Positions 28,247 through 34,645 of a stretch of 64,000 bases of DNA are shown in pieces. Under the pieces are notes generated by a model. The model was not told the DNA's origin. It made no database searches and saw only the letters and a program-made list of their open reading frames with translations. Origin of the DNA: Mytilus edulis (lineage: Eukaryota). Location: positions 22,196,001-22,260,000 of the forward strand of contig NC_092345.1 in assembly GCF_963676685.1 (NCBI RefSeq). The letters are read 5' to 3'. A program made the translations under genes and the position numbers. Every line of letters starts with the position of its first letter. The first letter of the stretch is position 1.

Positions 28247-31200
28247 ATGTCAGAACAGAAGTGTGATCCTTGCTCAAGAGATGAAGTAGAAACCTGTGCC
28301 ACGACTTGGTGCACTGACTGCGAAGAAGCGCTATGCGCCGATTGTACGAGGGCCCACCGTCGCAACAAACTGAGCTTATCCCATGTTTTATTAGATACTT
28401 CAGAAATCAGTTCATTACCAGAATCTACCATCACAACGCAAACGTTCTGTGATATTCACTGCGACATTCTACTTGAGTTTTATTGTCAGTCCCACAGTAA
28501 GACCTGTTGTCGTTCTTGTATGGTGGAAGCACATCGAAACTGTGACAATGTAATACCGTTGAGCGAAGCTTCAAAAAATATAAAATCTTCCCCTATAATT
28601 GAAGAATTGTCTGCAGAAATAGAAAATATTATTAGTACAGTCGATAAATTGCTACAAAATGGAAACGGAAACTTGAAGGAGATTGAAAACCAAGAAAGGG
28701 AAATCTTAGATAGTTTATCGAAAGCGAAAAAACAAGCAACCGACACTTTCGATAAAGCAGAAAAATCTTTGAGGAACGGTCTTGCGAAAGAGAAAAAAGT
28801 TATTGAAGAAAAGGTAAAAGCTCAAGATGCAACTATGTTACAAATCAAAAAGTCAACCGAGGTTAGTGACCAGGAACTCAAATTTATTGAACGTTATGCA
28901 TCCGATGTCCAAGGATATCTTCAACTACGAAAAGTGAAGCAGGAACTCCGCACGAAAGCAGATGAATTAGACACTTCAATTTCTGAGATAACTAAAATGT
29001 CAATGAAGTATGACAATGCAACAGATTGGTGTGTCAAGTCACTTGGCAGCGTCAGCGTAGAAGTGATACCATGTCCTATTGTATATAATCCTGTATATCA
29101 GACGTCAAAACCAGAAGTTCCAATGTCTGCTCCTCCTCCTCCAGCGCGAGCGGCAAAAGAACAAACAATTTTGGATCATTCTGGTAAATGGTAAACAAAA
29201 TTAAGAATAACAGATAAAAGACAATGTCAATTAAGAAACTGCGTATAGATTGATTAAGCTAGCCTAACTTGTTAAGTGATCGATTATGACTTCATTTTAT
29301 TTTGATACTCAGAAACCTTTTATGTGTTTTGCTTCTAAGTTTCTGTCCCCAAGTGTCTTTTAATAAGGTTCTAGTAACGCTTGTCATGTACTGTCACATT
29401 TCTAATTCGTTTAATTTTAAAATATGTATAATATTTTATGCATTAAATCATGGTGTCAAAATAACTAAAATGTCGAAAGAACATATTCAATGATAAAGAC
29501 ACCAGAAGAAAATAGAGGCATCAATATTTATAAGTATTCGCTTTTTAATGTATGAAATAATCTCAATGGAATTATACATTTTACTTAAATTTCCAGATGA
29601 AAATACTGTTAACGTACTAGAAATACCAGTCGCATCAATAAGAAAAGGACTAAGAATTAAAAGTGGACAATTTGCTGATGTGTGGAAAGGTAAGAAGTTC
29701 GAAGTTTAGATAAATTGTATGTAGTAATTCAGAACAATCAATGAAAATTTCAATCAAATACAAAAAGTAATTCTCGATTTATCACCGAGTTTGCATGAAC
29801 AAATCTTTATTCTTATTTGTTTTCGAAAATTCCTTCTGTCGATTGGTAAAAAAACTTTCAACTTAAGTATCAACCAATTTTAAATAGTCGTTGTTCATTT
29901 ATCACGAGGATTACATTAATTTTATTGAACCTAACTGTTTTTATTTTCAAAAGTCCAGGGGCCTGGTTTTCGAAAGTATCTTATGACTAAGACATGTCTT
30001 ATGATGGTCTTAGGACATGTCATAGTCGTAAGATATGTTTTCGAAAGTGTCCAAAGTTACGATTTGTCATAACTTTTGTTGTAAACTTAAGACCCCTCGC
30101 GACATGACTTATGATGGTCATATGATTTTCAACTAAAATTTGAATTACTTTTCATGTATAATTTCATGTTCATTGCAATAAAAATATTAGTTGTGTTTCT
30201 CAGTTAGCTAAATAGTAAAGTTGTTTTTTTCTCAACTACGTTAATTAAAAATTGAATCTCCTGCGGTATACAATTTTGATTTTTTTTCTAACTCATGGTT
30301 TTGTATAATAAATATACATATCATTGCGTTCCTAGTATATTTAAAATAGTACTGTATTAACGTATGTGCACGGGCATTTCGTTAAGCTGGTACTCGATGT
30401 ACCGAATCTAAAAATTATTCAGTTAAATAACTATGCATGTATGATAATACACGAAAGCGAAGTTCAAGATTTATTATATATTACAAACTAAATTTTAACA
30501 AATTATCAACTCATATTTAAATTCCTTTTTGTATAAAATTTCATGTTCATTATAATAAAATAAATAAAATATTCGTAAATATTAATAACGGTAATAATTA
30601 ATATGTTCATACTTTTCATTTTCATTTTTATATTTATCATTTTTAATCATTATTTAAAATAATAGAACATAATGTTCACCTATGACAGACATAATAGCAT
30701 CATAGCTATGACTCTCTTAAGACAGCTTTGATTTACATCCTATGACATATCATATGACAGTCATAAGATGATCATAAAATATGTCCTAAGATATATCTTA
30801 TGACATATCTTATGATACTTTCGAAAACCAGGCCCCAGTAGAATAACTCTAGAACTGTAAAATTCAAAACGACAACAATATAATTTAATCCGTCTTCAGT
30901 GGTCTGACATATTCCATTAAAAATTCGATCGGTTCCAAAAAAAGATTTTCAAATAGCCGGCCCGGAAACATTTTTCCACAATCAGTTACTAAATCTTTCA
31001 AACGGTAAAAGTGAAACGACGAAAATGAACCTGTTTTAAGTGATCCGAATATTCAATTAATATTTCAAAGAATTAAAAAAAAAACGGTTCTCTTGCTTAC
31101 GTTAGTAAACCAAACGTGTGATGAACGGTCGGACGGACAAACATACGGATTCATATATTCCCAGATATGTCGAAGTCGTTTTGGTTTTACGTTACGCGGC

Positions 31201-34200: not shown

Positions 34201-34645
34201 ATGTAGACAAAAATTGCGTTTTGCGTACAAAATTATAAGCCTGGTATCTATGATGTCCACGAAATTCCGACTTATTGCAAAGCCATTTTTATTTTTCTCG
34301 ACAGGAATAAAGAAACAAGACCTTATTCCTATGATGAAAACTGGTTATCGACATCCTCAACCTGAAGATTGTTCCGATTTAATTTATGATATTTTACTTC
34401 GATGTTGGAATGAGAATCCCGACGAAAGGCCAACGTTCGATTTTCTTTACAATTTCTTCGATACAGTAGAAGTAATTAATGATGAAGATATAGGAAGCGA
34501 CGATGTAATGTCAGTTGCCAGTAACGAAGAGGAAAATGCATCAAGCAGACTGAGCGATGTACACGAAGACATACTACCTACACAACGAAGCAAGAGTAAG
34601 AAAAAACATCAACAGAAAGACAAAGAAAAATGCACTATATCATAA
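28247..34645 (+). CDS. B-box1/B-box2/coiled-coil (RING-less TRIM-like) fused to Src-like tyrosine pseudokinase with C-terminal basic tail and CaaX, ~647 aa
   Basis: Exons 28247-29183, 29597-29689, 31353-31636, 33356-33506, 33802(or 33808)-33939, 34305-34645; GT-AG junctions, phases 1,1,0,1,1 consistent. B-boxes CDPC...[17 protein letters not shown] and CDIH...[19 protein letters not shown]; kinase LEIP...[51 protein letters not shown]; ends [17 protein letters not shown]. Confidence 0.85.
29959..30835. mobile_element. PIF/Harbinger-type MITE (877 bp) in kinase-gene intron 2
   Basis: 22-bp TIR GGGCCTGGTTTTCGAAAGTATC; 3-bp TSD CAG at 29956-29958 and 30836-30838; subterminal TCTTATGA/TCATAAGA repeats. 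Confidence 0.85.
31736..33274. mobile_element. Non-autonomous TIR element (~1.54 kb) in kinase-gene intron 3
   Basis: TIR TGTTACAGGGAATTTGT / ACAAATTCCCTGTAACA within TA repeats; arrays of near-palindromic AGTGATTTTGTAAAATCACT subterminal motifs at both ends. Confidence 0.85.
34105..34255 (+). mobile_element. Degenerate retrozyme fragment with mutated hammerhead in the last intron of the kinase gene
   Basis: GCGTTA CTGATGA GTCTTATGTAGAC AAAA... (GAAA->AAAA, stem III lost). Confidence 0.7.

Follow-up and report, generated by a model that had tools for sequence, protein, structure and literature searches.

A B-box/coiled-coil module joined to a Src-derived, predicted pseudokinase domain in one expressed gene of the mussel Mytilus edulis

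Proteins which combine the N-terminal part of a TRIM protein with a kinase are known from human tumors, in which TRIM24, TRIM27 or TRIM33 is fused with RET, or TRIM24 with BRAF; these oncogenic fusions are somatic, and their kinase is active and forced to dimerize. Pseudokinases which serve as scaffolds or allosteric regulators include JAK JH2, KSR, STRAD and HER3 as well as the plant SPA proteins with their kinase-like domain and coiled coil, and we know of no scaffold pseudokinase with B-boxes or with a descent from a Src-family domain. The gene described here occupies positions 28247-34645 on the plus strand of a stretch of 64,000 nucleotides (nt) from Mytilus edulis (NC_092345.1, positions 22,196,001 to 22,260,000), which is referred to as the window in the following and whose numbering is used throughout. 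The source genome is AT-rich and comprises 1.37 Gb, and the proteins encoded in the window show 87-91% identity to proteins of Mytilus coruscus and M. californianus. Altogether, it is assumed with a probability of about 0.6 that this expressed single gene encodes a cytoplasmic, dimeric B-box/coiled-coil-pseudokinase of 647 amino acids (aa), which is held at the membrane and acts as a non-catalytic scaffold or regulator in tyrosine-kinase signaling, and that it arose when a Src-like gene had its SH3-SH2 exons replaced, with a duplication at a later time.

Gene structure and transcripts

The fusion gene comprises six exons (E1 to E6) with a total of 1944 nt, corresponding to 647 codons and a TAA as the single terminal stop. 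The intron phases are 1, 1, 0, 1 and 1, and the start ATG at 28247 is preceded by an in-frame TAA 9 nt further 5'. E1 (28247-29183, 937 nt, phase 0 to 1) ends at the donor G/GTAAAT and encodes residues 1-312 with B-box1, B-box2, the coiled coil and the linker. The short E2 (29597-29689, 93 nt, phase 1 to 1) encodes the first part of the kinase domain, in which the glycine loop is degraded, and E3 (31353-31636, 284 nt, phase 1 to 0) contributes the beta3 Lys within VVVKV, the alphaC helix and the hinge. E4 (33356-33506, 151 nt, phase 0 to 1) contains the catalytic loop HTDLSAKN (33398-33421) and the GFG motif (33458-33466), and E5 (33802-33939, 138 nt, phase 1 to 1) the activation segment, PIKWTAPE and alphaF. 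E6 (34305-34645, 341 nt including the TAA, phase 1 to stop) encodes a Src-family-like end of the C-lobe, an acidic stretch and the tail. In the Pfam analysis of the exons, zf-B_box was detected in E1 (5.4e-8) and successive parts of PK_Tyr_Ser-Thr across E3-E6.

The initial annotation of this stretch, which was made from the letters alone, had joined the six exons including the 93-nt exon, for which it gave the same 31 residues as found here, to one 647-aa frame with consistent phases. All of these joints were recovered in RNA contigs of three runs (X1, X4 and X5) aligned to window 28700-34699, where the five joints lie at the predicted positions and show GT..AG ends; X5 is recorded as RNA-seq, and X1 and X4 are RNA by guess only. 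E1, E2, E3 and E4 are found together within one contig in two runs (X4 record 6, 1543 nt, and X5 record 11, 1422 nt), a contig of the third run bridges E1, E2 and E3, and X1 record 5 comprises E4, E5 and E6. The joint 33506/33802 places the acceptor of E5 at 33802. For the joint 29183/29597, which connects the B-box exon to the kinase exons and had been singled out for checking, the contigs are continuous and the depth of intron 1 is 0 in all three runs, while some unspliced signal of lower depth was present in intron 4 (X4 record 9). From the bridging contigs and the zero depth of intron 1 it follows that the B-box and kinase halves are one expressed gene with one mRNA. In addition, a 647-aa open reading frame (ORF) on an assembled transcript contig of 2234 nt (P0158) showed 98-100% identity over exons 1, 3, 5 and 6, and its matches over the short exons 2 (89%) and 4 (85%) extend into the adjoining introns.

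The same data bear on the possibility that the locus holds two separate genes, a short B-box protein terminated by the stop at 29194 and a kinase with a transcript of its own, with an accidentally shared frame. ORFs consisting of exon 1 only, with 301-323 aa, are indeed present in databases (P0002 and P0200-P0203), but all five continue via a G-K read-through of the same G/GTAAA donor and have the appearance of exon 1 predicted as an ORF on short contigs of probably genomic origin. Transcripts that terminate after exon 1 are contradicted by the contigs, which continue from the B-box exon into the kinase exons in all three runs. Two separate genes are accordingly regarded as extremely improbable. 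A retrocopy as the origin of the intron-less contigs was rejected as well, since the genome contains no second close copy of exon 3.

Besides the exons, RNA signals were observed in two introns. RNA contigs of moderate depth, which show several indels as well as loose ends, cover much of intron 3 (window 31730-33170) and are probably transcribed repeats and not exons of the fusion gene. In intron 5, a piece of approximately 40 nt (34172-34212) with the hammerhead-core-like sequence CTGATGAG showed RNA word depths of 262, 4803 and 538 in the three runs. Since loose ends occur on both sides of this piece, the reads originate from a highly expressed repeat located elsewhere, which is possibly retrozyme-like; no Rfam match was obtained across the window at the gathering thresholds. 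The raw RNA reads of a further run, X21, fell almost entirely on a repeat fragment in intron 5, with nothing for the exons.

The two halves of the protein

The N-terminal half comprises two zinc fingers, a B-box1-type finger at 28262-28384 (residues 6-46; ligands C6, C9, C22, C25, C30, C33, H37 and H46) and a B-box2 at 28439-28561 (residues 65-105; ligands C68, H71, C80, H83, C88, C91, H96 and C99), both on the plus strand as is the whole gene. B-box2 was recognized by Pfam PF00643 with 33.3 bits compared to a cut-off of 24.1 bits. The score of B-box1 for ANCHR-like_BBOX (23.2 bits) was below the cut-off of 27 bits, which is exceeded by the 56% identical P0002. All 16 zinc ligands are present, in columns whose conservation amounts to at least 90% among 103 aligned relatives, and exon 1 could be aligned with the RBCC (RING, B-box, coiled coil) structure of TRIM28 (6H3A, E 2e-11) over residues 9-205, spanning B-box1 and B-box2 of TRIM28.

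The closest relatives of this half are the RING-less B-box/coiled-coil/beta-propeller proteins of bivalves, which end in NHL or SGL propellers. They share the same 16 zinc ligands and the SLG..PCP motif after the coiled coil, show 25-33% identity to the fusion gene and are encoded by dozens of propeller-type copies in the same genome. The assignment of the B-box part to this large family by the initial annotation is therefore upheld. The propeller-type genes are mostly single-exon ORFs of approximately 550-590 aa, whereas in the fusion gene the ORF is truncated behind the linker and continues by splicing into five kinase exons.

In agreement with the earlier description, neither SH2 nor SH3 domains nor a transmembrane (TM) segment were found by Pfam in the exons and in P0158, which comprise only B-box and kinase matches. 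The same analysis gave no RING, and a scan of all open frames in the 64-kb window for a RING pattern was negative. A RING exon concealed further upstream was considered and rejected because of the in-frame stop 9 nt upstream and the missing RING pattern in the window; P0158 and the M. coruscus ortholog begin at the same Met as the ORF at 28247. Compared to TRIM/RBCC proteins, the B-boxes are thus present and the coiled coil with an antiparallel dimer is predicted, and the N-terminal RING is absent.

The structure was modeled with AlphaFold2 on the near-identical P0158 (alignment of 67 rows), resulting in a mean predicted local distance difference test (pLDDT) of 82, with approximately 80-97 over the B-boxes, the coiled coil (approximately 90) and most of the kinase fold. 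The model of the N-terminal half consists of two small zinc-finger folds, a helix of residues 116-217 with a return helix of residues 220-247 (28592-28987), two short strands and the disordered linker 287-318. For two copies of residues 1-312, the homodimer model of this hairpin of approximately 130 residues reached an interaction prediction score from aligned errors (ipSAE) of 0.67 in all three runs compared to 0.00 for the best control, with a partner pLDDT of at least 74 and an agreement of the runs in at least 61% of the contacts, a score which reports likeness and not binding. Among microbial test cases, 21 of 30 solved one-chain pairs but none of 23 single chains reached the mark for a dimer, and for eukaryotes the numbers were 17 of 29 and none of 30, respectively. 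The tightest contacts (204-125, 200-132, 197-136 and 211-121) show a constant index sum of approximately 330, which indicates an antiparallel coiled coil as in TRIM dimers. The coiled coil is accordingly predicted to form an antiparallel homodimer, and the model with its controls supports the self-association of the module that the initial annotation had proposed as oligomerizing.

Two motifs lie in parts of the protein that are disordered in the model, namely in the linker 287-318 (pLDDT below 50) and in the tail 601-643. The linker ahead of the kinase contains PPPPAR, which the initial annotation had noted and which was located at 29132-29149 (residues 296-301); in M. coruscus and M. californianus it reads PPPPVR. 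This PxxPxR motif of the class II SH3-ligand type suggests an SH3 docking site. At the extreme C-terminus, a polybasic run and the CaaX box CTIS were found at 34580-34642, with the Cys codon at 34631-34633, i.e. the Cys at position -4 is directly preceded by a basic cluster, as in membrane-anchored proteins of the K-Ras4B type. The CTIS tail is identical in P0158 and M. coruscus, and a CaaX box with X = Ser is of the farnesyltransferase type, which makes a lipid membrane anchor plausible. Although no TM segment is present, the polybasic run and the CaaX box imply that the protein is not without a membrane signal.

The kinase domain is by sequence nearest to Src, Hck, Fyn, Lyn, Abl and a reconstructed Src-Abl ancestor (E 2.5e-57), and E6 aligns with HCK, Lyn and Src (E 1e-11). 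A maximum-likelihood tree calculated from 33 kinase domains places the three sequences from Mytilus inside the group of SH3-SH2-kinase Src/Frk proteins (18 rows, 96/92), which is sister to Abl (96/92) and separated from Fer/Fes, Eph and VEGFR. The kinase phylogeny thus agrees with the Src-like domain claimed at the outset, and due to the long branches, with a stem of 1.46 changes per column for the Mytilus sequences, their exact position inside the Src/Frk group is unsafe. The domain shows 33-39% identity to Src/Frk kinases; its four intron positions agree with theirs, as does the phase-1 intron which precedes the linker/G-loop exon. Unlike Src/Frk kinases, the fusion protein comprises neither SH3 nor SH2 ahead of the kinase, starts with MSEQK instead of a Met-Gly myristoylation start, has no Tyr in the activation loop and, with a tail lacking Tyr altogether, no C-terminal regulatory Tyr. 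A membrane signal, if any, would be the C-terminal CaaX box, in contrast to the N-terminal myristoylation of Src/Frk kinases.

The motifs of the catalytic center are degenerate. Compared to the Src-Abl ancestor, the glycine loop is changed from GSGQFGEV to KSGQFADV, and the alphaC Glu is replaced by Ser in the alignment with ABL1. HRD is changed to HTD and DFG to GFG, which is seen as KITGFG opposite KITDFG in the alignments with EGFR and TYK2 and also in comparison to the Src-Abl ancestor. The activation segment NGDTLKMDTAFPVP lacks the Tyr of canonical kinases. All of these changes are identical in the window species, M. coruscus and M. californianus. PIKWTAPE is retained, and the kinase fold was modeled with a pLDDT of approximately 79-97 over most of the domain and 68-79 in its first ~30 residues. 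By the usual operational definition, for which it is sufficient that at least one of three residues is lost (beta3 Lys, catalytic-loop Asp or DFG Asp), the domain is a predicted pseudokinase on account of the missing DFG Asp.

Origin, relatives and neighbors

The origin of the kinase half is suggested by its exon structure. The same genome contains two canonical Src-like genes with SH2 exons, at C1:80.81 Mb and C1:124.23 Mb, in which the limits of E2/E3, E3/E4, E4/E5 and E5/E6 lie at exactly the same positions. In the gene at C1:80.81 Mb, the exon homologous to E2 comprises 171 nt, has a phase-1 intron on either side and starts within the SH2-kinase linker, and E2 represents the last (3') 93 nt of this ancestral-type linker/G-loop exon, also with phase 1 to 1. 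Since only these 93 nt are present, either the acceptor of E2 was shifted by 26 codons or the break fell inside the 171-nt exon. From these comparisons of gene structure we infer that a B-box/coiled-coil ORF of the bivalve B-box/propeller family took the place of the SH3-SH2 exons in a Src-like gene, with the junction at a phase-1 intron, which fits a gain of the phase-1 donor by the truncated B-box/coiled-coil ORF on fusion. The exon shuffling through a phase-1 intron proposed in the initial annotation is in line with the shared introns and the homologous phase-1 intron, with the qualification that E2 is only a part of the ancestral exon. The gene at C14:63.04 Mb, which is the closest paralog of the C-lobe, was recovered by tblastn for exons 4-6 only and was dropped in favor of the two C1 Src-like genes.

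Orthologs were found in two further Mytilus species. The M. coruscus protein (CAC5413576.1, 647 aa, named "uncharacterized") aligns exon by exon. The M. californianus protein (XP_052092547.1, P0001, 545 aa) carries the name "tyrosine protein-kinase src-1-like"; its model starts at the Met equivalent to residue 92, so that B-box1 and the greater part of B-box2 are missing, and ends with KSKKKQ. Either this model is incomplete or the tail was lost in M. californianus.

Furthermore, a paralog is present in M. coruscus (CAC5384617.1, "SRMS", 659 aa), in which the B-box/coiled coil is combined with a more degenerate kinase. Its copy in this genome is located at C2:43293053-43302750 on the minus strand of the same chromosome, 21 Mb from the fusion gene. 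The paralog forms a sister lineage with the same B-box/coiled-coil exon and Src-type kinase exons, but its identity to the fusion gene amounts to 31-33%, and it shows HCG for HRD, GLE for DFG and no CaaX box. A longer linker with two YDDI-containing repeats, encoded by small repeated linker exons, is found in the paralog only; YDDI resembles the pYEEI ligand of Src SH2 domains. As a further observation, an exon which encodes SH3 separates the E4-like from the E5-like kinase exon of the paralog, a position within the activation segment; the M. coruscus model uses the SH3 exon and leaves out an E5-like exon (FKWYALE...) that is intact. Both paralogs lack the DFG Asp and the same two glycines of the G-loop. 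These shared losses are explained most simply by a single fusion that was already catalytically impaired and was then duplicated.

In a tree of the B-box/coiled-coil part, the two fused genes and the exon-1-only relatives are united in one clade (98/97), separate from the propeller-type genes. The exon-1 ORFs P0002 and P0200-P0203 show 52-58% identity to the fusion gene and P0046 shows 45% identity to the paralog, all of them on short contigs; the G-K ends of the former five match the donor of E1. The paralog with the same architecture at 31-33% identity, together with exon-1 orthologs at 45-58%, points to an old family, and the gene structure appears to predate the genus Mytilus.

Outside Mytilus, no further protein with B-box and kinase was found in a profile search. 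A word-based search with the B-box half returned 4 proteins in the length range, which has little bearing on the wider distribution. A cluster of 64 members in the ESM Atlas shows Pfam matches to kinase and B-box (score 0.96) and may be the cluster of the fusion protein itself or an independent family. So far, the B-box/pseudokinase fusion has been seen in mussels only. In Mya arenaria, two proteins (P0173, SRK3-like, and P0187, LCK-like) comprise a RING ahead of SH2 and a Src-type kinase, without SH3.

Regarding the neighborhood of the fusion gene, an exon of a rhodopsin-family G-protein-coupled receptor (7tm_1, 3.7e-33) lies at window 10287-10730 on the minus strand and exons of a major-facilitator transporter lie at 41221-43617 on the plus strand; both are ordinary neighbors. 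At 61303-63150 (plus strand), 27 kb downstream of the fusion gene, a single-exon ORF of 615 aa encodes a Mab-21 nucleotidyltransferase and a Mab-21 C-terminal domain (cGAS/cGLR-like).

Proposed function and comparison with known systems

Taken together, the fusion protein is probably a dimeric, non-catalytic signaling scaffold. In the proposed mechanism, the coiled coil would form a TRIM-like antiparallel homodimer, and this dimer would display two kinase-fold domains which do not perform ordinary Mg-ATP phosphotransfer and could function as modules for binding or allostery. SH3 proteins would be recruited through the PxxPxR motif, the farnesylated and polybasic tail would keep the assembly on the inner leaflet of the membrane, and the whole would act as a non-catalytic scaffold or regulator of tyrosine-kinase signaling. 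With respect to its origin, the B-box/coiled-coil part would have substituted the SH3-SH2 exons of the Src-like gene, and the fused gene would have been duplicated afterwards.

Several points weigh against this scaffold reading. SH3 binding, prenylation and the scaffold role are what we infer from motifs, and the CaaX box is missing from the RefSeq model of M. californianus, which ends 12 residues earlier, as well as from the paralog. The dimer score may stem from the memory of the model for solved TRIM coiled coils. Furthermore, the beta3 Lys and the Asp and Asn of the catalytic loop are retained, so that ATP binding or an unusual catalysis may occur, and CASK also carries GFG and functions without Mg. 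Finally, the amino-acid identity to M. coruscus is 84-92% per exon, which between Mytilus species indicates a fairly fast evolution.

The retained residues raise the question of an active, atypical tyrosine kinase, which would be switched on when the coiled-coil dimer pairs the kinase domains and would represent a natural counterpart of the TRIM-RET and TRIM-BRAF fusions. Besides the retained beta3 Lys, the Asp and Asn of the catalytic loop and PIKWTAPE as well as the complete fold, the predicted dimer would be in line with such an activation, and GFG does not abolish the activity of CASK. However, four elements are changed together, namely two glycines of the G-loop, the alphaC Glu, the HRD Arg and the DFG Asp, and the activation loop offers no Tyr for trans-phosphorylation. 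The long stem branch is consistent with a released catalytic constraint, and the paralog additionally lacks the catalytic Asp and Asn. On balance, an active kinase is considered unlikely.

The degenerate catalytic motifs, the fairly fast protein evolution at 84-92% identity and the loss of the CaaX box in one species model could also originate from a young chimera, transcribed and spliced, whose product has no maintained function and is decaying. In this case, the intact frame of 647 codons in at least the window species and M. coruscus as well as the conserved zinc ligands and kinase-core motifs would not be expected. Among the 11 exonic variants listed between the window and the RNA contigs, 8 were synonymous and 3 were not, and in the kinase exons all three were synonymous; despite the small sample, this synonymous excess points against decay. 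As the paralog keeps the architecture at 31-33% identity and exon-1 orthologs exist at 45-58%, the family is also old and not young. A decaying chimera is therefore judged to be very unlikely.

Beyond the scaffold function of the single gene, a wider reading is put forward as a tentative possibility. Accordingly, an old and small mussel family would exist in which a TRIM-like B-box/coiled-coil protein has its C-terminal, substrate-binding propeller swapped for a Src-derived pseudokinase. Its members would be dimeric and membrane-anchored and would dock SH3 and SH2 proteins, through PxxPxR in the present gene and through the YDDI repeats and a putative SH3 cassette in the paralog. They would regulate Src-family signaling, perhaps in innate immunity, and would form a new TRIM-like class. 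If true, this family would be a germline, kinase-dead counterpart of the oncogenic TRIM-kinase fusions.

In literature searches, no paper on a natural protein combining a B-box or TRIM module with a kinase or pseudokinase was found, and the initial annotation, which did not recognize the architecture as described, is supported to this extent. It was not new to the databases, since the architecture is already contained in public protein databases as a two-gene family under automatic names. The oyster kinome paper (PMC4883820) reports that Src-family kinases have expanded in bivalves and mentions no B-box-kinase protein. For kinase evolution, the fusion gene represents a clear case of intron-supported exon shuffling out of this expanded family, and the Mya arenaria proteins suggest that exchanges of TRIM-type modules with Src-family kinases may be recurrent in bivalves. 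For TRIM biology, the pseudokinase is an added type of C-terminal domain, as the TRIM classification (PMC3503706) lists no class ending in a kinase. The reach of these findings is limited, as the fusion has so far been seen in mussels only.

Compared to the known scaffold pseudokinases, the fusion protein likewise shows an intact kinase fold, lost catalytic residues and oligomerization or adaptor modules. In the SPA proteins, the kinase-like domain is N-terminal and a WD40 domain is present in addition. These proteins are mentioned in PMC8024647. In the oncogenic TRIM-kinase fusions, the N-terminal B-box/coiled coil is likewise joined directly to a kinase without its own regulatory N-terminal domains, so that the analogy drawn by the initial annotation holds for the architecture. 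Since the mussel domain is a predicted pseudokinase, the likeness is probably not one of mechanism: the mussel gene is germline, conserved across species and predicted to be inactive, whereas the oncogenic fusions are somatic and active. A domain pairing which arises by chromosomal accident in human tumors is thus evolutionarily fixed and long kept in mussels with a kinase that appears disabled, and this points to a scaffolding or allosteric use of the dimerized kinase fold rather than to constitutive signaling.

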